From Dimorphilus gyrociliatus (taxonomy: Eukaryota > Animalia > Annelida): 41,717 nt of DNA. The notes beneath the pieces were generated by a model that was not told the origin of the DNA, searched no databases, and worked only from the letters and a program-made list of their open reading frames with translations. Where the stretch lies: positions 82,378-124,094 of the forward strand of contig CAJFCJ010000063.1 of assembly GCA_904063045.1 (NCBI GenBank). Reading direction: 5' to 3'. Shown here piece by piece: positions 1,621 through 30,591 of the stretch. Numbering within the stretch: the first letter of the stretch is position 1; each line of letters begins with the position of its first letter. A program made the position numbers and the translations under genes.

Positions 1621-1627
1621 CGACCCC

Positions 1628-3235: not shown

Positions 3236-3271
3236 AATTATTTTTCAAGTTTAATTAATCATTAAAGTATT

Positions 3272-3373: not shown

Positions 3374-3375
3374 AA

Positions 3376-5405: not shown

Positions 5406-7900
5406 GAATACGACAGAAAACGGCCCCAACAGAAAACGGACCCAACAGAAAACGGCCTCAACTTGAACAGAAAACGGCCCCAACTGGAACAGAAAACGGC
5501 CCCAACTGAGACAGAAAACAGCCACAGGATTCTTCAACCTAAAATATATAAAACAAGAAATGAATTAAATTTTGAAAGTGTGTTTATTTGAAGAGTTGAA
5601 TACATTATGAGACTACAACTTAAAAGATCATGCAATTAAACAACAATTGATTTATTTATTGAGCTACTAAATAAAGTTCAGAACACTTTACTAGAACTTG
5701 TGATGAAGTAATCTCATGCTTTTCAAATCTTTCCCAAATTGAAAATATTTTATTTTGCAGGTTCTTATAAAGCTTTCTTTGGTATCTTAATATCTTCTTT
5801 TCTGATAACATTCTTTGATATGCTGCTATAAGGTCTGCTTCCCTTTTCAATTCATCTATCACAGAATAAAATGAAACATTCACTCCAACATTTCCATTCA
5901 ACCTATTGTGAAATCCCTCAACATCATTATTTGTTCTGATTGCACATTGATAGATAGACCAACATTTTGGTGACCAAACATCATTCAAAATCCAAGTTCT
6001 TTCAAAATAATCAATAAAATCAGCAAGTTTATCAATTGATTTAAGGTAATCCTTAATTTTAATAAACTCTATTGGAATAATGTGAGATGGAAGGAATGGC
6101 AAAGCCATTAGCTGTCTCATTTCAAACCATTGTCCATTTTTTTTGTTGAAGTCTGATGAATAACCAAGCTCCTAAAAAAACAAAATTAAAAATGACTCCA
6201 GTTTGAGTTTTAGGTTGAATAATACCTGAATTTTTCTATAAACTGCTTGATTCTAATGGAATAAGCATCCTGACAGATTTACATTTTCCCAATGATTTAA
6301 TACAGCTTTCCAAACAGCTTTTTCAAAATCCATAACTATCTTTTTTGGTTCCTTATATTGTAGCAGTTGATTAATGCACTTAAAAACAGTGAAATGAATA
6401 TTAAATGCATTTCAGAGAAAATTTCAAGTTGAACTACCTTGAATAACAGATTATATGCTTTTTTCTTTTTTGATGACATGAATGCATATAGAAGAGGAAC
6501 CTGTTTTAATTCACCTTCGTTTTTGAGGAATGAGTGAAATGAAAATAACTGTGTAAATGGGTCCTTAACAATCTTGAAAGTTCCATCTAAGTACCAGACT
6601 TTTGACACTGCAAGTAAGCTAAGTTGTTTTGAAGTGGAAAAAATAATCACTCTTTCATTTTTTTCAAGGACATCTTCCTTTAAGAAATCATCAGGAATGA
6701 AGCAATTATTAATAAGAAAGTTTCTTCCAATAGGTTCATTGGGACGATTTTTTCTTCTATGGTAATTTATCATTTCTTTGCAATTTTCAACTTTTACAAT
6801 ATTTCCCATATTTGCAAAAGGAAGCAGAACATTTTCAGCTATTTGTTTTCCACTAACATTGGTGTCAGTCTTTCCTTTTTGTTTTGCTGTCACTTTCATT
6901 TCAATAATTTGTTTTAAATTTTTTTTGGGGGGGTGAATATGATATTTAGACCCCAAAGAGAAGTTATTATTTCTTTGAACAACACTGGCAGGACATTTCA
7001 TTTTCTTGCTTCTAACTCCACATCTCCAAATTATGGAAGTCTTGTCTTTTCTTTTGACAACAAATGAGTGACCATTAGATACAAGTAATTCTTTGCCTTT
7101 TTGACTTCCTGTAGGGAATATTCTGAATTTACCATTGCTGTCATAGTTCACCTCTGGTATACTTTCAAAGGACTCCTCCATATTGATATCATTCTCATTC
7201 AAATGTAATGTATTTCCATGCAGAGGGCTGCTTTCACTAAGATTATCAACAAGCCTGTACTCTGAATCACAATTCAGTGTTTCAATAAGGGTAACCACTT
7301 CTTCATGATCAACATCCATTATTATATTTTGCACATCTATCTCTTCTCTTGAATGATTTAGATCTATATTTTCAGCATTTGAGACTTTATTGGTAGATTT
7401 ATCTTGTAAAATTTCATCACATTTGCTCAGAATAATTCTGATTCTTTTTTTATCAACACTTGAACATATAGAACATAATCCATCTACAAAAGAAAGAGCT
7501 TAGTTTACATTAAAATCAATTTGGATCTTACCTGATAAACAAGCCCAATGGACTTTATGATGACAAAGTGAACAAACACCTTGCTTCAGCTTATTAATCT
7601 TTTTCTTACATCCAAAACAATATGGTAGCATTGTGGCAAAAATCTCCTTTGAGCTGCTTTAACCTATTGGCAGGAATTTAAAAATAGTGCAAAATATTCA
7701 ACCTCTTAGGAAAAACTGGTGGACAATTTAATATTTTTTCATCCAATATTTACTAACTAATAGAAAAAAATTTTAAATTAACTTATTCTATTCAATTTAT
7801 GAGTATTGTATATTTTGAAATTTTGTGGCTGTTTTCTGTCTCAGTTGGGGCCGTTTTCTGTTGGGTCCGTTTTCTGTTGGGGCCGTTTTCTGTTGATCCC
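5406..7900 (-). mobile_element. Full-length MULE element E1 (2495 bp)
   Basis: Inverted subterminal arrays of AACAGAAAACGGCCCC at 5406-5527 and 7822-7900; ends GAATACGACAG and CTGTTGATCCC; encloses a transposase. Confidence 0.95.
5656..7631 (-). pseudogene. MULE transposase (PHD-like finger, FLYWCH finger, DDE), 4 exons, one in-frame TAG
   Basis: MLPYCFGC..CSLCHHKVHWAC/CSIC; GKELLVSNGHSF..WRC..C..HIH; WYLDGTFK, MDFEKA and RTNNDVEGFH. The three introns splice in frame. GCLFH*NQA carries a TAG at 6253-6255. Confidence 0.9.
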
Positions 7901-8780
7901 TGATACATAGGCTCATATGAAACTTCAATTGTTTATCTCACATTCTACCCTGTTGCACTAACTCTTTATGTTCTCTGATTGAAAAGGAAGTGCCCTATTT
8001 TTTTGAAATATCTTTTCATTGATAATTGAAATTTATTTTAAAGGGGTAAAGATTTTGTTAAAAGTCAACCAAAAACAATTATAGAAATGTACAGTAAGCT
8101 AAATGGCCAGATATTGCTTTGGTAAGAGATGTTTTTATTTCTATAGAAAATCCTTTCTTTTGAGATGATCCATCAGTTTTGAGTACAATTCTTATATCAT
8201 TAACTATTGGTTCTGTATAGACATCCTCCACAGAGTAGTAATGGTGATTAAAAAATCCTTCAAATTTAAAGGAGGGACCTAAAAAATATAAGATAAAAAG
8301 TTAAAAATTCAATGGATATATTTCTTTGTTTTTTTACAGACCATTTGAATTGATAATAGACAATTCATTTCCACATAATTTAGCAGAATTTGAGTTCTGT
8401 GTTATTAAATGAGAATCTTGTTGACAATTTGGTGAATACTCCACACCAAACTTAACAAATCTCTCAAAAAAATACTGAATATAAAGGGAAAAATATAACA
8501 TAGTCAATATTTAACAAAGTGAAGAGAAAACTTGAATTTCTTACCATTTTACATCTTGCATAATGTCTTAATATTAAACTGGTATTTTTTATACTTTGAT
8601 AAGGCTCAAGAGATTTAATAACTATCCTTTCACTCTCACATGACAACTGATAAACTTTATTCTCGTAATCTTTGAATCCAATTGTATACAATTGTATACA
8701 ATTTTCTCTTTTTTATTATCATAATTGGTTTTGGTAATTTTGTTTTTATTTCAATAAAATATGACCTACTGCCTAAAAAT
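7901..8780 (-). pseudogene. Multi-exon CUB-domain gene fragment truncated at the E1 end
   Basis: Spliced exons give FGVEYSPNCQQD..KLCG and IRIVLKTDGSSQKKGFSIEI (CUB signatures). A 10-bp duplication at 8681-8700 shifts the frame. Confidence 0.65.
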
Positions 8781-9009
8781 GGAGAAAAAGAGATTACTGG
8801 AACCACTAACCTTCACATAAGAAAAAGTTTAATTCAACCCTTCTCGATGGCACTTAATAAATTTTGAAGAGTGAAACCTTAATTAACCTTGTACCCAACC
8901 AAATAACTAATTCTGGTGTCAAACTGCATGAGTACACAGATTTTCATATCAAAATTATAAAAAAAACATTATTGCATGATAAAGGAATTTATTCTACTTG
9001 AAGCAAAAC

Positions 9010-9145
9010 AAAAAAATGGATTTCATTCCTGATGATTTCTTAAAAAATGACATTTATGAAAACAGCAATAGAATCCTTAATTTTGTCAAAATTATTTGTT
9101 ATAGATAGAACTTTCAAGATTGTGAAAGATCCACTCACAAAAGAA
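9010..9145 (+). pseudogene. MULE transposase remnant
   Basis: FIPDDFLKNDIYENSNR and IDRTFKIVKDP match E1 FIPDDFLK and LDGTFKIVKDP. Confidence 0.6.
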
Positions 9146-9234
9146 ATTCTTTAAGGGGTATTTCTGTGCTTCCCAATGGTGATTGATTTAAGAATGCTTG
9201 GATCAATGGTAAGTTTGTAAATGAGTTGTTGATA

Positions 9235-9400
9235 GCCTGTTAAAAATGAACATTTTGAAGATTTTTTGGGTAAGATTTTGGGTGGGGAATGGGTTATTAA
9301 AAATATGCGAGCAATTGATTTGTAATTAGGTGGGTCCAAACTAAGGTTAGGAAGAATGAAGTTCTTAAAACTGGATCCAGGGCTGGGTTAGGGTGAAACC
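9235..9400 (+). mobile_element. Decayed internal fragment of the TTAGG-rich MITE family
   Basis: GCAATTGATTTGTAATTAGG and GGGCTGGGTTAGGGT are shared with 3540-3590, 19100-19130 and 21980-22100. Confidence 0.4.
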
Positions 9401-9722
9401 TCAAAACTGTCTGAATTTTTTACACCTCCATTTGCATTTGGTTGTGAATCTGGCAGTATAATTCAACAGATTTTTTGTGAGTTAATGAGAACAAGAATCC
9501 TTACAGTTATATTACATTCTTAATAAATTAAATAGCATATTTATAGAACTACCTGTAAATCTTTGTTTAGGCTTGACACTCTCAATTCTGCATTATTAAT
9601 CCTATTAATAAGACTAAAGAAGTTCTGACTGACTTAGTGTTGTTATTATTGAAAAATGAGTTAATGAAAAGAATTCAATTGAAATTACACTGATAATCCC
9701 CTAATCAGAATACAATCTTGCT

Positions 9723-10908
9723 TTAAATATATGGTAAAGCACCATACTTTTCTAAAAATAATAAATTACAACATTGATTTGTGTTAAAAAATTTCAAGCT
9801 TTTTTTATTTGAAAATATTATTTCAAATGCTGAAAAGTTTGATATAAAACTTTTACTATTCAATTTTCTTGAATTTGATGATTTTTGTATTAATCTTTTA
9901 ACAACTTCGCCAAATGACTGAATATCATCAGAACCTAATTTTGTATCACAGTTACAAAATTTTTTTATTAACAGTATACACTTTTTTTTATTGCCTTCCA
10001 AATCCTTTTTTTTTAAAGAAAAGATTCTTTTTTTAAATAAGAAAAGACTGTAATAAATCTTCACCTGAAATGTTATTGTATCAAATGATATATCCTTATT
10101 ACATGACGATTTGGAATTATGACAAAATATAATTGCTGTTATTAAAGATTTTGCCATAATTAAAATATTTTTATTATTAACTATTTTAGGATCATTTTGA
10201 TTCATAGCAGAAAGTGGTAATGCTTCTCTGTCATATGATAAAAAATGGTAATTCATTTTATTACTGAATTTAAAATCTGTTTTTTTTTACATATTGAGAT
10301 TATTAATGAAGATATATTTTTATTTATTACTTTTTTCAAATTCTTTTTGTTTTGAAGCTGCAATATTTTTAGCTCTGCAGAATTTTTTTAAAAATTTTTA
10401 AGTATATTATTTTAAATTGTAGTAGGCCTTTAGTCTTACCTAAAACTTGCAAGAAAGCTTAAAATATCAGTTAAAGTATATAATAGAGGGTTAACAACTG
10501 AATTTAATGGTAGAAATATAACAACCAGTGCAATGTAAGCTTGACTTGATATAGTCAATGTAAAGAAAACTGAATAGATTCCTTTAAAGCAGAAAAATTT
10601 GTAAAAAATGAATATGAATTTATCATGATAAAACCTAAAATTGAAATTGGTAACCAACAAAAAACATTTGTTATAACAATTAAAAAAGATCTTAGTTTAA
10701 TTTTTTTTTGTAAAGTTTTAAATTTAGATTTTTCAAGTATATTTTTAGATTCCAAAGTTTTCTTCCATATTTTAAAATATAATGCAACAATTATTAGACA
10801 TACTAAACCAACAAAACAACCAAAAAATATAAAAGAAAAGAACCATCCTACTGTTTTAGAACTGGAAATATGTAATGTAAAACACACTGGACTTTTTGAG
10901 TAGTAATC
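9723..10908 (-). CDS. 3' exons of an LGR/relaxin-receptor-like (GRL101-type) GPCR with a long C-terminal extension; 5' part missing
   Basis: VCFTLH, IVITNVFCWLPISILG and FLPLNSVVNPLLYTL are LGR-type TM5-7 motifs. Three short GT-AG introns join these in frame to ORF 9723-10256. Confidence 0.72.
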
Positions 10909-11115
10909 CTAAGGATAGAAATTTAAATTATAACTCTGAAAATTTTTGGGTATTGACAGAAAGCATTTATGTTTAGGGATTTTAAATATTGAATTTTGAA
11001 ATTGTCTTAACTGCTCTATGGAAACTGCAAGATGAAAAGGTGAAAACAATCAATGTTTTCTGTCATAAAACTAAAAATTACTCTATAAAAGAACAATGGA
11101 GATATTGATACTAAA

Positions 11116-13639
11116 GGTGCAGTGACATTTCGGCCCAGGACAGTTCGGCCCACTTTTGGACATTTCAGCCCATTTTATGACTTTTTGAGTTAATTATGAA
11201 TTAATTACAATAAATAAGAAAAAGCAAATCAATTTTAAAATTAATAAAAAATATAATAAGTAATATAATATAGTAATTCCAGATATGTAAAATAATTATT
11301 ATAAAATTCAAAATATTTTCAGAATAATGGATACCAGTTTTCCTTATTTCTGAAGTATATTTTACATTGTTTTACAATTTCCTTTTCCTGTTTTGAGAAA
11401 AAGTAGAAAGCATATTTCTTTTCTTCATTTATCATAGAAGCTTCAATAGAAATTACAACATGAATTTGAAAAACTGTTGGAAGTGTGGATTAAGATTTCA
11501 TTGTACACAAAGAAAATTCAGATGCCAGTTGTGCAGACATATTATCATACAAAGTGTTCAAAATGTAAGTAAACTCTGTAACTTTCTCAGGTATAATGCT
11601 ATATCACCTATATATTAAGATGCAGATTATTGTCCTGATTGTCATGATGTCAGCAAACAAAAATTATTTATTAAATTAAAGAAAATAGATAATTATCATC
11701 AGAGTAAATTCATCCAGAATATGATGAAACTGTTGTTAATTTAGAATCATCAATGAATAATACAAGTGAAATGAATACAAATCAGGTAATTTCATTTGTT
11801 CAAAGATATTATTATTTCACCATAAATTTTAACAGTTAAGACTTTCCTTTGACTTCAATTCACCTGAATCACCAAACAATGAAAAAGAGTTGAACTTTCC
11901 TGAACATGACAAGACATGGCAAAGAGAGTTGATATAAGTGATGAAACTTCATTTGAGATGGATAAGCAGTATAACATCATGGAAAAAGAAAGAAAGAGAT
12001 GATTTCAAAATAGTTGTAGGTGGAAGTACAAAAAATAAAGACTTACTTCTACACAAAAACTGTTCATATTCTGTAAAAAGAAAAACTGAAAGTTCAATCA
12101 CCTGGAGATATACTCAGAGATATGCCAAAGCTCCTTGTCCTGCATACATATTACAAAAGGGATCAAAGTTCATTGTAAAAAATGAAAACCATCTTCATAA
12201 ATTGCATAAAAACATAGAAAGTGTTCTTCAATCAAGAATGGACTTAAAAGAAATGGCAACTGAGTAAAAGACCAAAAGATCCAAGACATTTAGATTGAAA
12301 AAAAAAAAAAAAAAAAAACTGAGTAAAAGACCAAAGCATCCAAGACATTTAGATTTTGAAATAAATCTGGATGAAGTTCCAATTGATTTCTTATTGAGAG
12401 ATATAAAAGAAAAGAAAAATCATTGTATTATAATTGGCACAAATCATCAAATAGAATTACTGGAATGTTGTAAAATTTGGTTCATTGATGCAACTTTTAA
12501 AGTTGTCAGAGATCCATTTTATCAACTGTTTTCAATTCATGGATTCTTGAAAAAACATGATGAATATCAACAGGTTCCATTGGTCTATGTTCTGATGAGT
12601 AGCAAGAAGAAAAGCTGTTAAATTGCTGTACTTCAGGTTTGAGATATTTCAGTATTTTTATCACTTTTAATTTATCATTTTTCATTTGAAAATAGGAGAT
12701 AAGAAAATTAATCAATGATAAAACTCCCAGAAAATGTGTGCCTGATTTTGAAAAGGCTATATGGATGGCACTTAAAGAGCAATTTCCCAATTCTGACCTT
12801 CAAGGATGCTCTTTTCATTTCAAACAAGCAGTTTTGAGGAACATACAGGTAGATTAAACAATCATATAAAGAAAATAATTAAATACTTATTTTATTAGAA
12901 ACTTGGATACATTACTGATTATAAAGAAAATGGGTACAAAGGAAAAATGTTACAAAAATTGATGTGTTTGGCATATCTGCCTTCAAATTTTATTGAACAA
13001 ATGTTTGTCCAACTAAAAGAAGAACTTTGTGAAAAGAAATTGTTTACAGATTTGCTTGAATATATAGAAGTAACATTCATGAAAAGCAGTACTTGGCCTC
13101 CTCAATTCTGGTCTGTTTATCAATTAATTGTGAGAACAAACAATCATGTTGAGGCATGGCATTCCAGACTAAACAAAAATTTGAAAATGGATGAGAAATT
13201 TTATTCTCTAATAAAAGAATTGAAAAGAGAAGCTGAATTAGCAGAGATCTTTGAAAAGTTATTGTCTGAAAAAAAGTTGAGAAAAATATAGAAGAAGAAG
13301 TATAAAGATTTAGAATTTAAAATATTGCAGTTGTGGAGTAATTTGAAGAAAGAGAATTGAGTTTGGATGAATTATTGGATAGACTTGTTGATTTAAATAT
13401 CTGTTAAAATTTGTTATTTCTTGTTCTGCATTTTAGTTATTAAACTTAACACTCCTATTTGTAAATTGTTTTTTATATTAAAAAAATAAACATAATTGTT
13501 CACAAAATAAAAATTATATTTGTCATATTTATCAATTCATAAGTACTAAACCTATCTTCAAGTGAGACACAATGCCTTTAGTATGATTACCTTAGAATGG
13601 GCCGAAATGTCCAAAAGTGGGCCGAAATGTCCTGACCCC
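11116..13639 (+). mobile_element. Full-length degenerate MULE element E3 (different subfamily)
   Basis: Inverted GACATTTCGGCCCAC arrays at both ends; PHD-like 5' exon, FLYWCH-like 11938-12267, WFIDATFK, GCSFHFKQA and RTNNHVEAWH; multiple stops and frameshifts. Confidence 0.92.
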
Positions 13640-14130
13640 ATTCTTTGAGCATAACAGATTTGCATTATGGAATTAATAATGGAACAAACAATATAGAAAA
13701 AATGCATGTCAAACTTGTTACATCTTATTCAAAAACAGATGCAGAAGAGGCAAGCTTGTTTTTGCTGTGCCACATGTTAGCCAGAAGTGATGCAATAGTT
13801 TTTCATGTCTTTGTTATGGATGGGGGTGTGAACGTACCCATGGCGGGTTGAAGCCTACCTTAATATATCTGAAATTGAGTGTAATATCTGTGTTTTTTAT
13901 ATTCCCTAACCCTAAATTGGAGCCCCTCTAACAATAAATTCATCCAAATATTCAAACTAACCCTTTCCTAAAATGTTTTCATGGTTGGAAATATTTGCTA
14001 ACAGGTATGTTTGCACCCAACCCCCTTTGTTATATGTTCATTGTGAGACTGTTACATTTCAACTTTGTAATCTTTTGACCAAGTGAACCCAAGCTTTGGT
14101 AAATGTATAAAAGGAAATACATTTCCCCAG

Positions 14131-14401
14131 TTTGGCAGTTCAGTTCTTTAATGGTTAACTGATTGTTTGAACTTGCTGGTTTGGAACTAGAAGCTCATTT
14201 ACTCAATGCATATTCTTTAACTAAAATACTGGCATTTTGTTGATTAATTTCTACCAAAATTACATTTTTTATAACTACTTGTGGACAAACTTGGAAGGTT
14301 CTGTTGGGACCAGTACTTTGGCAGATTGGTAAATGATTGGAAAGGATGAATACTGTTCAGAAGAAGCGGAAATTCCTACAATTACAATACGACAAAGTAC
14401 A
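14131..14401 (+). mobile_element. LTR 3'-portion fragment
   Basis: Diverged copy of 23597-23866 ending in CAAAGTACA; it interrupts the B-box gene. Confidence 0.7.
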
Positions 14402-14773
14402 GAAAAAGTTCTACATTTCTCATGATTTTCATCAAAACACAAAACACATAAGTTTTCCATGTCATGTGTTTGACAATACAACAATGACTCCTCATCATGA
14501 TTATTGCATGTACTTTTCATCTTTCTTTGACTTTCATTTGAATGTTCAAGTTGATTTTTTTTGTAGTTGATAAATTTGGCAAAAAGTTATTTTGATTGTT
14601 TTCCTGCATACTGGATAGGAAATATGTGTATTTCTAACTTTTAATTGTTTTATACATTTAAAACAACATGTATGTTGACAAGGAAAAATTCTACAATCAT
14701 TTCTTAATCAAGAACCCAAACAAAGTGCACATTGAAATTCATTTTGGTTGTTAAAATATCCTGCAACAGCCAT
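14402..14773 (-). pseudogene. TRIM-like RING plus B-box pseudogene
   Basis: MAVAG..CALC..*..FPCQHTCCF(fs)CIKQ..YPVCRK, then CNNHDEESLLYCQTHDMENLCVLCFDENHEKC; contains an in-frame TGA and a frameshift. Confidence 0.8.
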
Positions 14774-15880
14774 TTTGATTATGTGCAGCAATATTTATAT
14801 TCTTATTTTCACTTTCAAATATTTCAAATAAGTTGCTTTAATTATCTGGTTAAATTTGTGATATTTTATGAAAAAGTTAATATTTAAATTTTTAAAATTA
14901 ATGATATTTTGGGCATTTGATCAATATTTTAAATGATTTTTGCTAAAACCTAGCGACGAACTATTATTTGAATATAATACTCAAATTAAAATGATTGCAT
15001 TGGTCTGCTTAGCTAAATTGTACGTTCGTATTTCAAAAGTACTGATCAATTTAAAGCAATTAATAAATATTTAAATTCAATGATTTTTTCAAAATAAGAT
15101 ATTTAAAGAAGTCAGTTATATAAGAGTTTACTGCTGAGCATTGGGTTTTCATTGTTTGAAGTGAATACCTGCATATTGTTTTTCAGCAGTGACAGCATTG
15201 AATTTCTTCTACCTGCAATAGAATCTTTTACTGCAGTTGATGGAAACAGATGTCTTGGAGGTTGTCAACAACACCCACTCTTTTGTGGTTTTACCTTAAC
15301 CATAATCCAGCCGTGGACCCTATTAATAAAGTGCTTTGTTGTTCTTACTCATTAGTTTAAACTCACCTCTTAACAAATCAATTGCTTTAATATTTTTCCT
15401 AGCCCAAAATCACCCAAAAAGAATTTAAATAAATCAATGTTAGACAAACAATAAACAGTGTAAAAGGCTGGATTTGGCCTTGATGAAAAGAAAGAAGCTT
15501 ATAGTTATAAGTTTCATTGAACAGAGGCAAAAATGAGGTATACAGTTTTTCAAAAACTGCTAAAAGCTTTTGATTGATATGAATTATAATTTTCAGTTTA
15601 CTACTTACACATTCTAAAAGAAAGCAGTATTTATTTTACCAAAATTATACTACAGATAGCAGTTAATAAAGTAGAATTGATTCATAAATTTGAGTTTTAA
15701 GAATTTTACTTTTAACATGTCAATAATTGTCTCTCTTCACAAATATTATCCTTTAACACTAATTGATTTCTTAATGAAGTACAAACAATTAAACATACAT
15801 ATTCCTTTATAATAATAGGTAATTTCATGTTGGTGGTAAATTTTCTTCAAATTGTGGCCGAAAATTTCCTATAAGCAGAA

Positions 15881-19966: not shown

Positions 19967-20066
19967 TGTACACATACAATAGATAAGTAGTATTGAACCA
20001 GTATTGTACTGTGCAGATAGCACTGATAAAGATAAACAGTATTGACCTAGTCTTGAGTAGGGCAGT
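19967..20066 (+). mobile_element. LTR 5'-end fragment
   Basis: Starts TGTACACATAC and matches 22963-23080 with a deletion. Confidence 0.7.
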
Positions 20067-20349
20067 ACATATTTTATTAATGGTAAAATTTGGAAGCAAA
20101 ATTTTTATTCTGTCCCTACCAACTTTTTCTCAGAACAAACAATAATGTTGAGGGTTTGGCATACAAGGGGCAAAATGTCCAGGTGTGAAATGTCTTGGAA
20201 TCATTTCACTGATTGTTAGAGGAACTAAACTATCAACTGTTAACTTTGTAGAGCTGATATACTCTTTAAAGTTTGGATAGCTTAATAGATTTATGTATTG
20301 TAATAAATAATTTGAAAAAATAGAAAAAAGCAATTGTTTCATTTAAATT

Positions 20350-21023
20350 TCATTTCCAAGACCTTTGTTTTATTTTAGAACAAAGTTTTACCAGAGATCT
20401 CAGCCCTAAAAATTGTTCTGGTTGTAAATCAACACTTGTTAAATGAAGATTTTTCAAAGAGTTTGATGATTTCTGAAGTCCTTCACAAATATTCAAAAAT
20501 CCTTTTTTCATATTTTTATTCCATGATAGATTCATTGTTTCTATTATGGAACAATGTTTTAGCAAATTTCCAGTTACTATACTTTGTTCTTCATTTTCCA
20601 AAAGTGTTTGATGAACTTTGAAGTCCTTCGCAGATACTCAACACTCCCTTTCCCATATGTATATTAGAAAAAAGATATATTGTTTCAATTGTTGAACAAT
20701 GTTTCAGGAATTTTCCAATCTTTGTACTTTGTTGTATATTTAAATTACATTCAAATAATTTCAGACTTTTCAAAGTCTTTGATGAACTAAGAAGTCCTTC
20801 ACAAATATTCAAAAATCTTTGGCTTTTGAATTTTATTTAAATAGTTATTTTGTTTTTTGATGTTTTGTCTGCATTGTGGACAGCTTAGTTCATGATTTTC
20901 CATTTTCAATTGTTGAATACATCCAAAACAATAGGTATGCTGACATGGTAGTATTGTTGTATCTTTTCCCACCAAGTATTTCAAACATATTGAACATTTA
21001 AGTTCTTTTTCATTGATCATCAT
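20350..21023 (-). pseudogene. C3HC4 RING joined to RNI-like LRRs, frameshifted
   Basis: CSIC..LPCQHTYCFGC..CPQCR (20799-21023) runs into LRRs with a 171-nt (57-aa) period; a ~26-nt deletion near 20600 shifts the frame. Confidence 0.8.
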
Positions 21024-21029
21024 TGTTTG

Positions 21030-21041
21030 GCCGCCATTTTG
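21030..21041 (-). promoter_or_regulatory. YY1-type motif GCCGCCATTTTG just upstream of the RING ORF
   Basis: Exact match to the YY1 consensus in otherwise very AT-rich DNA; similar GCCATTTTG at the start of the paralogous RING at 14773. Confidence 0.35.
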
Positions 21042-21629
21042 AAACCATGGCTTTTTTTCGTTTTACTTTTAGCTATATTGGTAGCTAAGGGTTGTGTTTT
21101 TATTTTGTGGAATTTCAAATTTTTTTAATATGTGATCAATTTTATGATTCAAAGGAATTGATTAAGTATCTTTTCCCGTAATTTAAGGCTGTACCAAGGT
21201 ATTACTAAAACATGGACTGATCTGATAAATGTAAGGAAAATATGAAATTAATGTCAAATAGTGTGCTTTGTGCTCAGTTTTAATTTAAGAAGAATTCATT
21301 AATAGAATAATACAATACCTTACCTATTTCAACATTGATGTCACAATAACAGATGTCTAAATGTTTCAAATTTATTGATAAATTTTCCACAGTTATAATA
21401 ATGTTTGGAAATGAATCATTTCCCTGATATAAAGCGGAATCTATGAATAATTGGATTTAAAAAAAAAAAAACAATTCAACTATTCAATTGCTGTGGTTGG
21501 ACCCATGGTATGAATCACGCTTCCGTGATTATTGCTCTGAATCATTCAATCTAGTTATATATATGCTTAAATTTTCTTTTTATCTTGTTGCCTAACGGAT
21601 TGAAACAACCTAAATTATCAGAAGGAAAT

Positions 21630-21827
21630 GAACACTGAAAAGCCATTTGATCTGGTCAAATCTGCAAGCATAATACAGTAAATATACTGCTTCTACCTTG
21701 CACTCATGTGATTATATGCAGAACATGCTTGCAAAGTCTATGGAAATCAGAGTGTCCATCTTGTAGAAAGCCATTTATTGGATTTAAAAGTATTCTTTTG
21801 GATTTGAAAAGCCTAAAATTGTTTTAA
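21630..21827 (+). pseudogene. IAP/Mdm2-type (C3HC4_3) RING remnant, not in the ORF track
   Basis: Restoring one T at about 21654 gives DLCQICKHNTVNILLLPCTHVIICRTCLQSLWKSECPSCRKP. Confidence 0.65.
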
Positions 21828-21928
21828 AGTGAAAATGTAAAAGAAGAAAAAACATTTTTTAGTGTTTACATATCTATATTAGAAATTAATTGGTACTAAA
21901 TTTCTGTCTTCCTAAACTGCGTTCTACT

Positions 21929-22135
21929 GGGCTGACAGAAAAAGTCCCCAAGTGAGATATTTGAAATTAGATTAAAAAAAGGGTTAGGAGGAACAAAGTA
22001 ACCATTGATTTGTAGTTAGGGGAGGGGGGGGGGTTCATCTAAGAGTTAGGGGTAATCAAAATGGTTAGAGAGAGACAAGGGCTAGGTTAGAGTTAGGGTT
22101 AAGCCATGCATTTGGGGAGATTTTCTGTCGTATTC
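21929..22135. mobile_element. MULE-derived MITE with both ends
   Basis: GGGCTGACAGAAAA ... TTTTCTGTCGTATTC; the right end matches the E1/E2 GAATACGACAGAAAA end. Confidence 0.75.
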
Positions 22136-22962
22136 ACTTTGTACTTATCATTTTTTCTATATTCTATTAATTAATATAATTCAAATTTTTTGTGTCCTTG
22201 CAAGTTAGATTGCCAAGTAAGTTTTTTAAGCAATTTGTAAGTATAGTAATAATAAACAATAAATGTTATCCAATTATAAGAGATTGTTAGACTATTTTAC
22301 CATCATGTTATAGATTTATAGATTTTTCAACATTTCAGTTTAAATGACAGCTGTTAGAAATTAGCTAAGAGCTGAAGTAGAGAATGGTAACATAAGGTAA
22401 TGTTAAACTATTAAAATTTAATACTACAGGGAACCATACTATTCATATTAAATGCTTAGTATTCACTCTCGGCCAAAAATATCCATACATGGAAAAAAAA
22501 ATTTTTTTCAGAAACTCATTTTTCTCTAATTTTAAGGAATAAAATATTTTTTATTAAATTGAATTATATTGTTTAAAGGGTATTCTATGTAATTTATATT
22601 TATTTATTTTGGCTTTTTAGAGTACCTTTTTTTTTTTAACTATAGACAACAAGTATTGTTTGCAATTAAATTATATGATTTAAAAGCGGCCATAAATCTC
22701 CATATAAATATGTTTTTGGTTTAAAATATTAGTAGAACATTCGAATATAGAAGACAATTGATTCAACATCTTTGTCAAAATGAAATATCAATCATAAAAA
22801 CCCCTATGACCTACAAAGAACTTGAGGCAGACTTGAATATCCCAAGATCTTCACTCCAGTACACCTGTGAGAACAAAAGAGAAGGAGAACCAGACAGGAG
22901 GGGAAGACCACCCTAAGTGGATGAAAGAACAAAGTGTCTGGGTTAGAGGGTTAGAAAGTGTT

Positions 22963-23866
22963 TGTACACATACATTCATCAGCTATATTCTACAATAGAG
23001 AAGTAGTATTGAACCAGTATTGTACTATGCAGATAGCACTGATAAATATAAGCAGTATTGACCTTGTTTCGCATAGGGCAGTGCATACACATTAGGCAGC
23101 AATAAAACCTATTAAATTATATAAAGAATATTTGCTATTTGCAACCTAGCATTAATATTACAATTTATTAATCCATACATTTATGATTTTGAACTAAAAC
23201 TAGTTCAATTAATTATCAATTATGCTTCAATTCTAAGTTTAGATTATATTCACTATTCAACAGTATTGTATACACAATACTGTTCTTCTTAACATGCATT
23301 AATCAGATATACTTCCTCTGCATATGCTGATGCTTGTTAAGGTAGAATATAAAAACAGTCAAATATACAATCTACATGTTTTCTTGATTGTTGCACTTGT
23401 CCTACTAAAATTGTTACATCTTATGCAACTCTCCAACCTGAGAAATTCAACTATTATTTAAAAGAGGAAAACAATAAAAACATGACCATATTTACAACTT
23501 TTCTTTGTCTTCAAATGTTACTTTTGTTTTTGTCAACATTGAAATTTGTCAACTATCAACCCTTAAAAGAGTATATAAACCCTACGAAATTAACAGTTGA
23601 CAGTTCAGTTTTCTAACCATCAGCTAGTTGTTTAAACTAGCTTGTTTAGAACTAGAAGCTCATTTTACTCAATACATATTCTTTGCACGAAATACTCGTG
23701 TTTTGTTGATTAATTTCTACCGAAATTGCCTTTGTTAGACTATTTGTGGACGAACTTTAAAGGTTCTATTTGTGTGAGTACTTTGGCAAGTTGGTAAATG
23801 ATTGGAAAGGACGATTACAGTTGTGACGAACCAGAAATTCCTACAATTACAATACAACAAAGTACA
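22963..23866 (+). mobile_element. Solo LTR copy B (904 bp)
   Basis: TGTAC...GTACA termini; flanks GTGTT/GTGTC (5-bp TSD with one mismatch); AATAAA at 23101. Confidence 0.68.
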
Positions 23867-23927
23867 GTGTCTGATCAAGAGAGAGAGTGTTAGACTATTT
23901 GAAAGAATTGGCAACTGCCAACAAAAT

Positions 23928-24134
23928 GGATGAGACAGAAAACATCCACAAATCAGTGCTTTTACCCTAACCCTAACCCAGCTCTTAGCTGTACCTAACC
24001 TTTTCCATTAGCCCTAACCCTCAGAGGAGACCCTCCTAACTACAAATCAGTTGCTGTTTTCTTCTGCCTAACCATTTCTCAATCCAAATTTTTGTCTTGA
24101 AATTTCTCATTTGTGGACATTTTCTGTCAACCCT
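23928..24134. mobile_element. MULE-derived MITE with CCCTAA-rich interior
   Basis: GAGACAGAAAACATCCACAAAT ... ATTTGTGGACATTTTCTGTCAACCC inverted ends. Confidence 0.75.
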
Positions 24135-25277
24135 GTTTATATATTATATTTTTGATTAAATATTGTAGATATGAAGTTGAATATGGACTGAAAGATATGT
24201 ATTTAAAAGGAATAGTATGTTTTAATGTATTCTAAGAGATCCAAGAACTTATTTTTTTCAAAAAAGCTCTGTCTTTATGCTGTCAAATGTCAGTTGAATA
24301 ATATGTGGAATGGCAAAAAAGGGACTGCCATCAATTTTCTGAAATCTTTCCAGTGTACCATCTAAGGGTTAGGGGTAATCAAAACGGTTAGGGAGAGACA
24401 GGAAATAAGTTTCTGATAAAAAAAATATTTTTTTTCAATATATGGATGTTTATGGCCGAGAGTGTAGTTTAACACTACATTATCTTATTGTTCTCTACTT
24501 GAGTAGTGTTATTATTTATGCTCGAGCTCAGTGACTTTTTTTTATTATGAATCTAGAAGAATACTTCATAATAAAACTACTCTATTAAAAACTTAAAGAA
24601 TTCTGTTTCATTAAAACAGCAATGATTGTTAATTAGTTGTTTTATATCATTAATAAAAAAACCTACAATATCTATATATAAAACTTATAAAAATGATATC
24701 AATTTATATATCAGTATACTTTCCTTCTTCCTCTTATGCAATTCCTTATCAGTTTAGGCCTTAGATGTTAACAAGAAGTTCTAATCACCCAGATAAGGAT
24801 TGCTTATAGCAAATAGAGTCAAGGGTCATCATGTTATGCTATAGTGATGTTAACAACTATCAAATTAACACTAAATTTAAGAAGTGATAAGTTTAAATTT
24901 CTCATTGAGAAAATTTTAAGATGATGAATTTAGAACAAAAATTATTGCAGTTACTCTCAGACAATGATAACAACTTTAACCTAAAAAGAATATAGCCCTA
25001 ATGCTTAATGATCTTTTTTGCTATAGATGGATAGATAGACTATTGGAAAGGACAAATTCAATAATGATGAGCCAGGACTTCCTACAATTACAATTTATAA
25101 TTTATATTTAGACTCAAAAATACTTGAATAAGATTTTTATTTACATAGTTCCCAATCAATTAATCAGTTAGCTGATTGAATGTTTACCACTGATACTACT
25201 CAATTCTTTCTTCTGAAAATTACAAAAATGCCTTTTTGTTCTTTTGCTGTTTTTCTTTTTTTCATATTGTAAAGAGA

Positions 25278-26204
25278 TTATAAATATTTCTCCATTTTTA
25301 ACAACAACTGTTATGGCAGAAGAAAAAAAAATGATAAAAGTGGCGTGATTGATAAATTTAGAAAGAAAAGAGTGTTAAAGTCTCTCTCTTGTTTGTTTTT
25401 TTTACCTCATGACCAGCATTTAGACATTTTGGACCACTAATTTCGTATGTTGTAGTATATCCAGCTCTAAGATAAAGATTTATTGCAGGTTTATTATTCG
25501 AGTATACAGTTAAAGCTACTTTCTGTAAAAAAAAAAGATAGTTAAACAATTTTGATTGATTGTTAAAATTATCTTAACCTGTGCACCTCTTTGCTCTGCA
25601 ATATATTCAAAATATTCTAATACATTACGAGCAATCTTCTTCCCTCTTGCCTTCGAATCTACTGATATATATTCTATGTATTTTTCAGGAATTTCTGATC
25701 TAACACTAGTCTTGTCCACTTGCCACAAAGCTATTAAAAATTTCAAAACACCAAAGAAAGGAAAAATTTTAAATACTTCAGAAAGTGGTAGATGTTTTTC
25801 TTTCCTAAAAATAGAAACAATAATAAAAATATTAAATAATTATAACCAAAATGTTACCCTTCAAAATCCTGTATTTTTATAAAACCTTTTACTTCATTGT
25901 CCACTTCGGCTAGTAAAAAATTATCTCTTGTAGTCGTATCGTAATTTAAGGTTTTTATCCAAAAATTTTTCATACATTCTAGATTATTTTTTCCAATAAC
26001 ATAGGTTATTTCACTTTTAAAACCTTCAGTTAGTAAGTGTGCAACTCTGGGTATATCTTCTTCTCCCTTCAACATTCTAAAATTAAAGCCATCTATAACC
26101 GGCATTGTTCTTTTTACAGAACCCTTTTTAGCTAAAAATTCTTTATAGTTTGGCAACGATCCAACTCGTTTGATAGTAAAAAGTCTCTTTGCCAAAGCAT
26201 TCAT
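25278..26204 (-). CDS. GNAT-family N-acetyltransferase, 4 exons, apparently intact
   Basis: YIEYISVDSKARGKKIARNVL (motif A) and VALTVYSNNKPAINLYLRAGY (motif B); the last exon LLLKMEKYL* lies at 25278-25307. Confidence 0.85.
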
Positions 26205-27040
26205 TGTGGAGTATAATTTGAAAATAAGAAATTAATTTAACAAAATTGATATTTTGTTTGAAAATTTATAATTTGAAAAAAAAAACTCTCACTATACACA
26301 ATTTATCATAGACTATTCTTACAAGACTTTATATTGAGATAGTATTATCAAATATCTGAAATCTCTTTTATTATCTAAATATAGAAAAAATTGGGACGGG
26401 GTTAAAATTTTCATGATTATCTTGTCTTATTCTAACCTACAAACCTAAATTACTTTTCACTGATGATAAGTGTAATAGTCCTTTCGAAGTTATCATCTTG
26501 ATTTTATCACAAATTTGAAAAGTATAGTTACATTTAATACAAATTAAATTATTTTCAAATTCATTTTTTCAGGATTTAATCTATTCAAAAATCCATCAAA
26601 TATATGGGAAAAGTATTAGCACAGATTTGTGATGGACTCATCCAAATGGAAATAATTGAGCTGTCTGCGAATCTGATTTTAAGAAATATACCTGATGATA
26701 TTGGTTGGATGAGTTACATATACGACGACAACGCCCTCTGTTGGTTATAAACAGTCAAAAAACAGCAAAACAATATCTTTTGGTTCAATAGAATTATTTA
26801 GTGTGGAAATGTCATTAATTATATATTTTATTGTTATAGAAAATGAAAGATTAATATTTGAAACTAGAAGAGATGATACAATCATTAAACTGGAGTTGTA
26901 TTGTATAGAGAACTTGTAGACTTTCTTCTTCGTTTGTATGTTGAAGGCCGCAAAGTCGGTGTTAACCGTTTTTAAAAGCATTATTTGCGTTATTTACAAC
27001 AAACTAAACATTTATAGTAATTTAAAAACTTTAAATTTTA

Positions 27041-28075
27041 TTAAAGTTTTACATGACAAATTTCAACATCAGCAAAATATTTTTCATCTGTGGCTATTGT
27101 GTAATACAAATTTGTAACTGTATCATTACTTTCATCACAATTAAAAATAAATCTCTGATAATTATTATTGCTAATTGAAGATGTTTTCAGTTGACAAAAT
27201 CCCAGGTGTTTATCATTTAAAAATCCATCATATTTCTATTGAATTTTAATACTATTTCCGGTTGTATTTCTCTAGAATTGTATATTATTCCATTTAAATT
27301 TGAAATTTCCACAACAGCCGGTGGTTTTATCAAAGCAGTACAAGTGGAAATTATTTTGTCCGATAGATGTTGATTTTGTGGTTTTGTACAAGATTCTCCT
27401 TCTTGTAAATAGACAATTCTTCCATCTGTGATTTTTTGACAATAAAAATTAAGAAATAAATTGGAAAATTTCAACAATTTTTTTTTACCTATATCATTAA
27501 TTTTCAGGTGATGATCATGATTAATTTTAGAATTTTTCCAAGATATTTGAGATATATTGCTCACATTGAATTGAGTATAGTAATTTGTGTATTTAGATTG
27601 TACATTAAACCTTTACCAAATTGGATGAGTCCATTTGACATAGTTACCCAAAAATCATTCCATTGTTGACAATTGATATATTGTTGAACCGATGAGTCAT
27701 AGAATTTTTTATTTGGATTTAAGATCTCTATAAAACTTTCTACTGTATTTGATATGAAAATTTTATAAATTGCAATATCGTTATAATAGAATGAAATATA
27801 TATCTCGCTGCAACTGCTCTTCTCTCCGTACAAACTGAAACTGAATGATTTAAAATTGTCGTAAATGTATGATGGAAGATTGTAAACAAATTCTAAAGTG
27901 TTTTGTAAAATATATGTTCTTTTTGGTGAATCTGTGAAAAACAAAAAAATCAATAATTCATTGACAGAATAATCAATATTTTTTTTTTACATACTTTCAA
28001 TAAACACTTGAACTAATGAAAATCCAATTTTCCGACGTCCTGTTACTTCTGTAGTTTCTGTGAATGTGATACATA
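27041..28075 (-). pseudogene. 3' exons of a mosaic extracellular gene (FAMeT-like plus galactose-binding-like domain), truncated at the E2 end
   Basis: QWNDFWVTMSNGLIQFGKG (Methyltransf_FA-type motif); a phase-1 intron at about 27932-27995 splices in frame; frameshifts near 27570 and 27225; ends VEICHVKL*. Confidence 0.6.
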
Positions 28076-30591
28076 GAATACGACAGAAAACGGCCCCAAC
28101 AGAAAACGGACCCAACAGAAAATGGCCTCAACTTGAACAGAAAACGGCCCCAACTTGAACAGAAAACGGCCCCAACTGAGACAGAAAACAGCCACAGGAT
28201 TCTTCAACCTAAAATATATAAAACAAGAAATGAATTAAATTTTGAAAGTGTGTTTATTTGAAGAGTTGAATACATTATGAGACTACAACTTAAAAGATCA
28301 TGCAATTAAACAAGAATTGATTTATTTATTGAGCTACTAAATAAAGTTCAGAACACTTTACTAGAACTTCTGATGAAGTAATCTCATGCTTTTCAAATCT
28401 TTCCCAAATTGAAAATATTTTATTTTGCAGGTTCTTATAAAGCTTTCTTTGGTATCTTAATATCTTCTTTTCTGATAACATTCTTTGATATGCTGCTATA
28501 AGGTCTGCTTCCCTTTTCAATTCATCTATCACAGAATAAAATGAAACATTCACTCCAACATTTCCATTCAACCTATTGTGAAATCCCTCAACATCATTAT
28601 TTGTTCTGATTGCACATTGATAGATAGACCAACATTTTGGTGACCAAACATCATTCAAAATCCAAGTTCTTTCAAAATAATCAATAAAATCAGCAAGTTT
28701 ATCAATTGATTTAAGGTAATCCTTAATTTTAATAAACTCTATTGGAATAATGTGAGATGGAAGGAATGGCAAAGCCATTAGCTGTCTCATTTCAAACCAT
28801 TGTCCATTTTTTTTGTTGAAGTCTGATGAATAACCAAGCTCCTAAAAAAACAAAATTAAAAATGACTCCAGTTTGAGTTTTAGGTTGAATAATACCTGAA
28901 TTTTTCTATAAACTGCTTGATTCTAATGGAATAAGCATCCTGACAGATTTACATTTTCCCAATTATTTAATACAGCTTTCCAAACAGCTTTTTCAAAATC
29001 CATAACTATCTTTTTTGGTTCCTTATATTGTAGCAGTTGATTAATGCCCTGAAAAACAGTGAAATGAATATTAAATGCATTTCAGAGAAAATTTCAAGTT
29101 GAACTACCTTGAATAACAGATTATATGCTTTTTTCTTTTTTGATGACATGAATGCATATAGAAGAGGAACCTGTTTTAATTCACCTTCTGTTTTGAGGAA
29201 TGAGTGAAATGAAAATAACTGTGTAAATGGGTCCTTAACAATCTTGAAAGTTTCATCTAAGTACCAGACTTTTGACACTGCAAGTAAGCTAAGTTGTTTT
29301 GAAGTGGAAAAAATAATCACTCTTTCATTATTTTCAAGGACATCTTTCTTTAAGAAATCATCAGGAATGAAGCAATTATTAATAAGAAAGTTTCTTCCAA
29401 TAGGTTCATTGGGACGATTTTTTCTTCTATGGTAATTTATCATTTCTTTGCAATTTTCAACTTTCACAATATTTCCCATATTTGCAAAAGGAAGCAGAAC
29501 ATTTTCAGCTATTCATTTTCCACTAACATTGGTGTCAGTCTTTCCTTTTTGTTTTGCTGTCACTTTCATTTCAATAATTTGTTCTAAATTTTTTTTGGGG
29601 GGGTGAATATGACATTTAGACCCCAAAGAGAAGTTATTATTTCTTTGAACGACACTGGCAGGACATTTCATTTTCTTGCTTCTAACTCCACATCTCCAAA
29701 TTATGGAAGTCTTGTCTTTTCTTTTGACAACAAATGAGTGACCATTAGATACAAGTAATTCTTTGCCTTTTTGACTTCCTGTAGGGAATATTCTGAATTT
29801 ACCATTGCTGTCATAGTTCACCTCTGGTATACTTTCAAAGGACTCCTCCATATTGACATCATTCTCATTCAAATGTAATGTATTTCCATGCAGAGGGCTG
29901 CTTTCACTAAGATTATCAACAAGCCTGTACTCTGCATCACAATTCAGTGTTTCAATAAGGGTAACCACTTCTTCATGATCAACATCCATTATTATATTTT
30001 GCACATCTATCTCTTCTCTTGAATGATTTAGATCTATATTTTCAGCATTTGAGACTTTATTGGTAGATTTATCTTGTAAAATTTCATCACATTTGCTCAG
30101 AATAATTCTGATTCTTTTTTTATCAACACTTGAACATATAGAACATAATCCATCTACAAAAGAAAGAGCTTAGTTTACATTAAAATCAATTTGGATCTTA
30201 CCTGATAAACAAGCCCAATGGACTTTATGATGACAAAGTGAACAAACACCTTGCTTCAGCTTATTAATCTTTTTCTTACATCCAAAACAATATGGTAGCA
30301 TTGTGGCAAAAATCTCCTTTGAGCTGCTTTAACCTATTGGCAGGAATTTAAAAATAGTGCAAAATATTCAACCTCTTAGGAAAAACTGGTGGACAATTTA
30401 ATATTTTTTCATCCAATATTTACTAACTAATAGAAAAAAATTTTAAATTAACTTATTCTATTCAATTTATGAGTATTGTATATTTCGAAATTTTGTGGCC
30501 GTTTTCTGTTCTGATTGGGGCCGTTTTCTGTTCATTTGTGGCCGTTTTCTTTTGGGTCCGTTTTCTGTTGGGGCCGTTTTCTGTTGATCCC
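28076..30591 (-). mobile_element. Full-length MULE element E2 (2516 bp), near-identical to E1
   Basis: About 20 substitutions versus E1 by eye; differs in the right subterminal array. Confidence 0.95.
28326..30301 (-). pseudogene. MULE transposase of E2, inactivated
   Basis: Same TAG as E1 (28923-28925), an extra TGA at 29513-29515, and LDGT changed to LDET. Confidence 0.9.

Follow-up and report, generated by a model that had tools for sequence, protein, structure and literature searches.

Elements and features of the locus

The stretch of annelid DNA analysed here, 41.7 kb in length (the window), carries two closely similar transposable elements, named E1 and E2, on either side of a 20.2-kb segment. 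The features are as follows, with T denoting a nonamer found beside both elements.

5397-5405: E1 outer flank, TTAAAAAAT, without a partner at any element end
5406-7900, minus strand (transposase sense): E1, a 2495-bp PHD/FLYWCH-MULE copy
6172-6225, minus strand: intron 3 of the transposase gene, 54 nt
6253-6255, minus strand: TAG stop of E1 where the conserved C.FHW motif has its Trp codon
6379-6437, minus strand: intron 2 of the transposase gene, 59 nt
7484-7531, minus strand: intron 1 of the transposase gene, 48 nt, GT..AG
7901-7909: T copy 1, TGATACATA, directly after the E1 right terminus CTGTTGATCCC
7910-28066: inter-element segment of 20.2 kb, proposed to be permuted, with a GPCR fragment, a MULE, B-box/LRR exons, MITEs and ORFs
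28067-28075: T copy 2, TGATACATA, directly before the E2 left terminus GAATACGACAG
28076-30591, minus strand, oriented as E1: E2, a 2516-bp PHD/FLYWCH-MULE copy
29513-29515, minus strand: second premature stop, in E2 only
30531-30551: 21-bp subterminal repeat unit that E1 lacks; E2 and other copies have it
30592-30600: E2 outer flank, ATGTTTTCA, without a partner at any element end

Alignment of E1 with E2 gave 2468 matches, 27 mismatches and a single 21-bp indel, and bore out the preliminary description of the elements as direct repeats (spacing 20,166 bp if the assembly is correct). The termini of E1, GAATACGACAG at window-left and CTGTTGATCCC at window-right, are confirmed by independent copies from other scaffolds, whose starts (GGGATCAACAG) and ends (CTGTCGTATTC) fall on the same bases. 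Approximately 12 substitutions are private to E1 and approximately 8 to E2. Since E1-only substitutions lie within 85 bp of the T-M1 junction and within 300 bp of the outer left flank, E1 is a distinct copy. The TAG stop of E1 is shared by E2 (28923-28925), and the Trp codon is kept in four other copies. Contigs from several sequencing runs were also compared with the window; run X1, the only DNA-type run, was taken as genomic DNA and belongs to the study behind the assembly, while the other runs behave as RNA. The intron joints of the transposase gene were seen in contigs of X2, X3 and X5 and were absent from those of X1.

Assignment to the MULE family

Domain searches were run exon by exon with the E1 exon ORF as query. 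A FLYWCH finger (PF04500) was identified at residues 77-134 of the ORF at 6336-7334 (E = 1.4e-11, 44.9 bits), together with a weak match to the MULE DDE domain PF10551 (E = 0.0036, 18 bits against a cutoff of 27.6). The nearest annotated relatives in the same genome, P0001 (94% identical) and P0004 (74% identical), carry precomputed PF10551 assignments. The inverted arms of E1 (5413-5483 versus 7823-7893) are 71 nt long, 92% complementary and composed of ACAGAAAACGGCCCCA units of 16 and 22 nt. Judged by the FLYWCH match, the weak MULE-domain match and the annotated MULE relatives, E1 and E2 are MULEs.

A related MULE, L004, has 74% DNA identity to the E family, shares its end motifs (GAATAC… and …GATCCC) and is flanked by a perfect 9-bp TSD, ATAAAATAT. 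The sole E-family copy with two readable flanks is represented twice, as L002 and L003, which are one insertion within a duplicated stretch; its TSD reads as 8 bp in the former and 7 bp in the latter, the readings differing in a C run. The TSD of about 9 bp given for MULEs in the preliminary description is matched in L004, and the E-family copy has 8 or 7 bp; the TSDs made in the clade of the family are 8-9 bp. Word depth of the family in X1 was higher than in the flanks by a factor of roughly 10-20, which gives the order of magnitude only, as contig depth is not copy number; the family probably comprises ten or more copies with 97-99% identity. It is transcribed and spliced in the RNA-type contigs, and with the Trp codon lost from E1 and E2 retained in the four other copies, the family appears to be active as well as multi-copy.

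The shared nonamer and the outer flanks

When both strands were searched, TGATACATA was found to have only two exact occurrences in the window, one immediately right of E1 and one immediately left of E2, exactly where the preliminary description had placed them. The match does not go beyond nine bases: what adjoins it either is element sequence or differs. No match exists between the outer flanks TTAAAAAAT and ATGTTTTCA, or between either of them and TGATACATA, again as described earlier. The observation of two direct copies, a shared nonamer on their facing flanks and unmatched outer flanks is therefore confirmed.

Based on the composition of the window (72% A+T), the probability of TGATACATA at one given place is 1.5e-5, and it remains below 1e-4 when the few noticeable pairings of flanks are allowed for. 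That two unrelated, rearranged elements have nine facing-flank bases alike by chance might be entertained for an AT-rich genome, in which about 1.3 occurrences of the nonamer are expected across the window, but the two that are actually present lie exactly, to the nucleotide, against element termini and on the correct strand, and coincidence is effectively excluded by these position statistics. As the match is far beyond chance, the earlier conclusion that a single target site was joined to the right end of E1 and the left end of E2 is sound. Unmatched outer flanks are what is expected if there were two separate original insertions.

RNA-type contigs and the flanks of E2

The contigs of X2 and X3 show E2-type letters at all of the exonic E1/E2 differences that they cover; in the RNA-type runs, E2 is the transcribed copy. 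Contigs of both runs extend left of the element (loose end 5406) into ...GTGAATGTGATACATA, and X3 also extends right of it (loose end 7900) into ATGTTTTCAGTAGTG..., so that, in the RNA-type contigs, the element with T at its left has the E2 outer flank at its right. Because these contigs reach both assembled flanks of E2, this element is probably truly without a TSD of its own. Coverage of 8052-8248 was nil in the RNA-type runs. The alternative pairing M2-T-E-T-M1 plus oL-E-oR (oL and oR being the outer flanks) was considered and is excluded by the E2 flanks and variants in the same contigs.

Proposed origin by reversed-ends transposition

Three routes had been proposed for the structure, and of these alternative-end transposition, which is a documented reaction, fits best; the other two rank below it. 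Specifically, a reversed-ends alternative transposition involving the right end of E1 and the left end of E2 may have permuted the 20 kb between them, a reading which, on the sequence, we consider about evenly poised between right and wrong. The starting point would have been two non-autonomous PHD/FLYWCH-MULE copies in direct orientation about 20 kb apart, each with its own TSD. The E1 TSD would survive as its left half, TTAAAAAAT, and the E2 TSD as its right half, ATGTTTTCA. As the copies are direct, the right end of E1 faces the left end of E2; these "reversed" ends would have been synapsed by transposase that an intact member of the family provided in trans. Cutting at both would release the segment between the elements; the two cut ends would then be inserted jointly at one 9-bp-staggered target, TGATACATA, within the released segment, and the two former ends of the segment would be sealed to each other by end joining, closing the chromosome. 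The product would read oL-E1-T-(former distal part)-(former proximal part)-T-E2-oR. The 20 kb would thereby be circularly permuted, the TSD would lie on the inner sides of the elements, and the outer flanks would have no counterpart. The copies with their orientation and exact termini, the nonamer they share, the E2 flanks in RNA and transcription of the family are observations; that both ends were cut together, that the target lay inside the segment and what the order was beforehand are what we infer from the sequence.

Such a reaction predicts an internal scar in which the inner halves of the two old TSDs are joined, so that ATGTTTTCA lies beside TTAAAAAAT. No such scar was found in the window in either orientation with up to three mismatches, the best approximate matches being at chance level or inside coding sequence; end joining could have degraded the old inner-flank junction. 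Joining 28075 to 7910 as a test restored neither a repeat nor an ORF. The preliminary description of the 20 kb as a circle opened at the element keeps its shared target site, but the segment may never have been opened in this way: neither an internal circle junction nor an empty site or unpermuted allele was found in the single assembly indexed. ORFs of the segment are found near 25.8-28.0 kb, and another MULE (11116-13639) is nested in it.

Alternative explanations

Of the competing readings, an assembly artefact comes first, though we think it unlikely. The four element-flank junctions would be real but misthreaded, with either a wrong left flank for E1 or a false join inside the 20 kb. Misthreading would have come about because contigs had broken in the 2.5-kb repeat, which is 97-99% identical between copies. 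The assembly, which is rich in gaps, was built from PBcR contigs of old PacBio data, with merging by HaploMerger2 and scaffolding by SSPACE-LongRead (PMC7854359). Gaps are frequent around MULE loci, the assembly often breaks at the E family, E-family copies in L001 and L005 adjoin N runs, and L002 and L003, which lie on two different scaffolds, duplicate each other at 98.8% identity. An X1 contig stops at 5192 where X2 goes on with sequence absent from the window, and after 10439 Illumina contigs and the window disagree by an indel of 9 bp. The left junction of E1 and the continuity of 7910-28066 are given by the assembly alone, the X1 contigs shown tiling only 8592-10661. Against an artefact, nine identical bases situated exactly at two element termini cannot be made by an assembler, the E2 flanks and variants are read in RNA-type contigs, private E1 substitutions adjoin both E1 flanks, and the window is without any N. 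Even if the 20 kb were discontinuous, the shared TSD would still need an alternative transposition of the translocation or inversion type. If a scaffolding error is the answer after all, this region of the reference is in need of re-assembly.

A cointegrate-like origin from one E element, by way of a 20-kb extrachromosomal circle and with duplication of the element, is improbable. E could have entered the circle by replicative transposition or by transposition of sister-chromatid ends, or else a circle with E at T could have recombined homologously into a resident E. In bacteria, an IS cointegrate is formed by replicative transposition of one donor IS, and the donor TSD pair flanks the whole structure. 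The preliminary analogy with this system holds for geometry, since here, as in a cointegrate or the "transpositional fusion" of an IS dimer, two direct copies bracket a circle-like segment opened at the TSD. The analogy fails at the outer flanks, where the TSD pair of the donor or resident is expected and TTAAAAAAT and ATGTTTTCA share nothing, and probably in the enzyme, as FLYWCH-MULE transposition is cut-and-paste rather than replicative (PMC5499845). The 20-kb eccDNA is an extra assumption. In favor of duplication, E1 and E2 share derived states, among them a TGG>TAG change that four other copies lack, as would be expected if one element had been duplicated; the common nonsense mutation fits either one copy having begotten the other or, equally, duplication of a single element by another route. 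Divergence in the internal region, however, is 0.80% between E1 and E2 versus 0.73-0.79% for either against L002, and being no lower than the divergence to L002 it does not mark the two as a clearly young duplicate pair.

Serial ectopic recombination is similarly improbable. Without any aberrant transposition, a standard insertion at T would have been duplicated with its surroundings, after which two deletions, through recombination with other E copies, would have trimmed the outer sides precisely at the elements. The probable ten or more near-identical copies are substrates for non-allelic recombination, and recombination between direct copies yields unmatched flanks; the nested MULE at 11116-13639 is also without a TSD. 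At least three events are required in place of one, however, and duplicated flanks or a leftover element inside the segment are predicted, while self-comparison of the window revealed neither duplicated T flanks nor a third E copy.

Comparison with known systems

The closest parallel to the proposed reversed-ends transposition (RET) at this locus is the maize Ac/fAc system. The maize reports (PMC3470690, PMC3744419, PMC4270019) describe reversed Ac/fAc ends that permute a 13-kb inter-transposon segment with a circular by-product, and cite Zhang and Peterson (2004) for the permutation alleles. Under the proposed reading, the two cases have in common direct copies that behave as a single transposon through their facing 5' and 3' ends, release of a segment and permutation of its order, a TSD-length repeat on the facing ends, and outer flanks left untouched. 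They differ in that Ac/fAc is a plant hAT system with 8-bp TSDs and the worm pair is an annelid MULE with a 9-bp TSD, in that the worm allele is natural (fixed or assembled) and its progenitor is not known, and in that the circle-junction scar of the maize cases was not found in the worm window.

For VANDAL21, an Arabidopsis MULE, alternative transposition has been proposed and a spacer circle detected by PCR (PMC12312487). As proposed there, the ends of two nearby Mutator-superfamily copies are used and a circular spacer is the by-product, which resembles the present case. The VANDAL21 pair is head-to-head with a 200-bp spacer, and its events were somatic in met1 mutants, with TSDs that were not resolved (PMC12312487), whereas the worm copies are direct, 20 kb apart and have an explicit TSD. 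The tandem direct duplications produced by RET, in which a flanking segment is duplicated and an identical TSD stands at the same side of each copy (PMC3744419), are alike in the element without a matching TSD and in breakpoints exactly at termini, but in the worm the TSD is on opposite sides and only the element itself is duplicated.

With respect to the enzyme, Muta1 of Aedes aegypti is a FLYWCH-MULE that moves by cut-and-paste like hAT elements, with excision by double-strand breaks (PMC5499845). The worm family shares its N-terminal FLYWCH finger and long TSDs and probably its DDE MULE transposase. It differs in having three short introns and, at the N terminus, an additional PHD-like stretch rich in Cys and His; E1 and E2 themselves are nonsense-mutated copies.

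Implications

In maize, alternative transposition has been proven to give rise to deletions, inversions, duplications and permutations, yet it is seldom recognised in finished genomes because its sole trace is a misplaced TSD. That an animal MULE carried out reversed-ends transposition in the germ line and fixed a 20-kb permutation inside an immune-type gene cluster is put forward tentatively, with confidence falling a little short of the halfway mark. If true, the reaction would have its first sequence-level footprint beyond plants and Drosophila P elements, and a clean annelid MULE case would show it to be general to cut-and-paste enzymes of the hAT/MULE type in animals. It would also provide a simple search rule for genome scans, namely a TSD common to the facing ends of two direct copies. 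Transposon activity would then be tied to a rearranged, fast-evolving receptor/immune cluster in a worm whose genome is among the smallest known from annelids, as a candidate means of reshuffling such clusters where the genome is very compact. The cluster in question comprises B-box/LRR genes, a GPCR and the promoter side of a giant Roco-TIR gene.

The E1 and E2 elements

The window is animal DNA with an A+T content of 72%. The preliminary description had placed two MULE copies in direct orientation within it, and repeats were found at the same coordinates. These copies, E1 and E2, belong to one PHD/FLYWCH family (the E family); 27 substitutions and a single 21-bp indel separate them.

Features of the two elements
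5406-7900, E1
28076-30591, E2, direct orientation relative to E1
5600-7700, minus strand, transposase gene region of E1
28270-30370, minus strand, transposase gene region of E2
7484-7531, minus strand, transposase intron 1 (E1 coordinates), short, GT..AG
6379-6437, minus strand, transposase intron 2 (E1 coordinates), short, GT..AG
6172-6225, minus strand, transposase intron 3 (E1 coordinates), short, GT..AG

The E gene lies on the minus strand and encodes a Cys/His-rich PHD-like N-terminal stretch ahead of a FLYWCH finger (E = 1.4e-11); the match to the MULE domain was weak, the exons having been searched one by one. Its ORF shows 72-94% identity to annotated D. gyrociliatus proteins. DNA copies 97-98.5% identical to E were identified at three other loci of GCA_904063045.1, and one of 94.5% identity at a fourth. 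The family is multi-copy, with a word depth in X1, the run taken as genomic DNA, roughly 10-20x that of the flanks, an order-of-magnitude figure only, contig depth not being a copy number. It is also expressed, contigs having been recovered from RNA-type runs. All three introns are spliced out in the contigs of X2, X3 and X5 (RNA-type runs) and retained in those of X1. Transcription of E2 extends at least 255 nt into its left flank and at least 181 nt into its right one, and E2 is therefore part of a longer transcript from the minus strand.

A TGG>TAG change in the C.FHW motif is common to E1 and E2 and absent from four other copies, and a second stop codon was found in E2 when the spliced model was translated and scanned. 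Both elements are dead, and the transposase for the E1/E2 event would have had to be supplied in trans.

The termini are asymmetric (GGGATCAACAG... and ...CTGTCGTATTC), and the inverted arms, of 71 nt, are composed of 16- and 22-nt subterminal units. Because the same termini recur, to the base, in independent copies and in MITE relatives, the limits of the element are objectively fixed, and its flanks with them.

Target site duplication

The 9-mer TGATACATA (T) directly adjoins the right terminus of E1 (7901-7909) and the left terminus of E2 (28067-28075), and no further copy occurs anywhere in the window. The outer flanks, TTAAAAAAT beside E1 and ATGTTTTCA beside E2, are unrelated. Both observations agree with the preliminary description, which had reported nine bases shared by the inner flanks and unmatched outer flanks.

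The 9-bp target site duplication (TSD) it had assumed for the family is compatible with the other insertions. Locus L004 holds a related MULE whose end motifs are the same (GAATAC… / …GATCCC) and whose 9-bp TSD, ATAAAATAT, is perfect. The sole E-family insertion with two readable flanks has one of 8 bp, and its duplicate one of 7 bp, differing in a C run. TSD length in these MULEs looks slightly variable. Partners were also sought at the ends of the nested MULE, the truncated MULE ending at 1627 and the MITEs, and none matched.

Proposed reversed-ends alternative transposition

A TSD forms when a left end and a right end, one of each, are joined to a single staggered cut in the target. In the present case the two ends come from separate copies and point towards each other, which, given a cut-and-paste enzyme, points to reversed-ends alternative transposition (RET). 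This is the best reading of the E1/E2 structure, with about an even chance of being correct. The facing ends of E1 and E2 would be cut, releasing the intervening segment, and both cut ends would be inserted together into T. With the target inside the released segment, the old ends of that segment would be joined to each other, closing the chromosome. The outcome would be a circular permutation of 7910-28066, with or without inversion, in which the TSD occupies the inner flanks while the outer ones stay as they were.

Such an outcome has been documented at maize Ac/fAc, where "permutations" of a 13-kb inter-transposon segment have been taken as evidence for its circularisation (PMC3470690; also PMC3744419 and PMC4270019); the E1/E2 structure works in the same way as these maize alleles. 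An inter-transposon circle was found by PCR in rice (PMC3470690), and in Arabidopsis a pair of VANDAL21 MULEs likewise gave a spacer circle (PMC12312487). Muta1, a FLYWCH-MULE, forms hairpins on the flanks when it cuts, as hAT elements do (PMC5499845), and the chemistry of RET is therefore allowed. The event type is thus already known, and MULE alternative transposition has already been proposed in plants. What would be new, if the reading is true, is a natural case, resolved at the sequence level, for a MULE of an animal, set in a cluster of B-box/LRR, GPCR and Roco-TIR genes.

RET predicts an internal junction, ATGTTTTCA.TTAAAAAAT, formed from the old inner TSD halves. Searching for the two sequences side by side in both orientations (gaps of -4 to 12, up to 3 mismatches) did not reveal it in the window, which does not fit the model; it may have been lost to end joining, an explanation that is no evidence in itself. 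Two candidates were rejected: 9032-9048 (ATGATTTC followed by TTAAAAAAT) is a conserved PDDFLK coding stretch in a MULE transposase relic (9022-9142), and the match at 27181 is at chance level. One perfect 9-bp tandem duplication, TTTCAAATA twice at 14813-14830, was the single case found in the segment, about 0.35 being expected by chance in 20 kb. It has the shape of a MULE excision footprint. In-silico joins of 28075 to 7910 and of 5405 to 30592, compared with the window and six other loci, restored no repeat or ORF; the joined T site restores nothing recognisable.

Integrity of the assembly

The assembly was built with PBcR from old PacBio data; HaploMerger2 was used for merging and SSPACE-LongRead for scaffolding. 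Its age, and the fact that E-family copies elsewhere adjoin runs of N, warrant caution. Such gaps lie directly beside MULE copies in four of the six fetched loci, truncating an E-family copy in L001 and another in L005; breaks at these elements are frequent in the reference assembly.

MULE loci adjoining gaps
L001, 11766-16406
L005, 6660-9892
L003, 15191-16832
L006, 7464-8106

L002 (1-7733) and L003 (7447-15190) are 98.8% identical over 7.8 kb, the former being the start of a 151-kb scaffold and the latter part of a 4.5-Mb scaffold. In both, the terminal repeat of another MULE-like element contains one and the same E copy, which has an internal deletion of 602 bp. Either a haplotig has been retained or a segmental duplication has occurred recently.

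Reads were compared over 4900-10800. Logan contigs were the only read data, so no single molecule spans an element. The X2 and X3 contigs carry E2-type letters at every covered exonic E1/E2 difference, including all E2-private sites in the span, and extend into ...CTGTGAATGTGATACATA at the left terminus and, in X3, into ATGTTTTCAGTAGTGTTC... at the right; none of them covers DNA on the right side of E1. The element with T on its left thus has the E2 outer flank on its right, which excludes the simple alternative threading, in which one element joins the two T-bearing segment ends and the other the two outer flanks. Within 85 bp of its T-bearing right flank, E1 carries substitutions and a 21-bp deletion that are private to it; within 300 bp of its outer flank it shows states that are private or in the minority. 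It is therefore a separate copy and not a polishing ghost. X5 was rejected as a second-strain DNA source, its contigs being transcript-like (introns removed, flanks uncovered).

Misthreading of the left junction of E1, or false joins within 7910-28066, is an unlikely explanation that nevertheless ranks next after RET. That junction and the continuity of the segment are as given by the assembly; X1 contigs tile only 8592-10661 within the segment. An X1 contig (1116 nt) also stops at 5192, where an X2 contig, matching to 5193, goes on with CTCTCACCAAGTGATTATAAAGAAATGGAT, which is absent from the window and six other loci. No splice signal was found at this boundary, 213 bp left of E1, and the break may represent a second allele, a paralogue or a polymorphic insertion. 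Loose-end sequences from the read comparison gave no matches in the window and loci. After 10439 an X1 contig has nine extra bases, CTTGAATCT, relative to the window, an assembly error or indel polymorphism.

Other models

Cointegrate-like origin from one element (replicative, through sister-chromatid ends, or by integration of a circle carrying E through recombination with a resident E) would account for the nonsense mutation common to E1 and E2. It requires the outer flanks to form a TSD pair, which TTAAAAAAT and ATGTTTTCA do not, and is considered improbable. The IS cointegrate, defined by that outer pair, accordingly differs from the present structure; of the routes proposed in the preliminary description, the alternative-end one fits best. 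Serial ectopic recombination, judged equally improbable, needs at least three steps and predicts duplicated flanks or a third E copy, neither of which was seen. The remaining probability is given to scenarios outside those considered. Tandem direct duplication by RET was ruled out since the element alone is duplicated, a macrotransposon using the outer ends since an outer TSD is lacking, sister-chromatid transposition of a single element since the outer flanks are not a TSD pair, and intramolecular replicative transposition since it would yield inverted copies or a deletion. Coincidental identity of the 9-mers (probability of T at one specified place, 1.5e-5) is regarded as excluded.

Neighbouring elements and genes

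Other elements in the window
11116-13639, plus strand, different, older MULE, termini GGTGCAGTGACATTTCGGCCC and GGGCCGAAATGTCCTGACCCC
1-1627, plus strand, third MULE, cut by the window start, ending ...CTGTCGACCCC at 1627
1215-1374 and 1532-1618, 21-nt subterminal tandem repeats of the third MULE

The older MULE is also without a TSD (flanks GATACTAAA and ATTCTTTGA) and adjoins a GPCR fragment with TM5-6 only (10555-10887); it may be the trace of another rearrangement associated with a transposon, or of a deletion next to it. The third MULE, of a related family, shows about 66% DNA identity to E over the transposase region.

A 0.9-kb inverted duplication (1833-2767 and 22963-23866, arms 96-97% complementary) links the left flank and the inter-element segment, with further copies at 14132-14402, 3268-3375 and 25030-25094. 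The repeated unit includes a B-box zinc-finger exon (14275-14520; PF00643, E = 0.0011) with LRR exons alongside, and its copies represent oppositely oriented paralogues from a B-box/LRR gene family.
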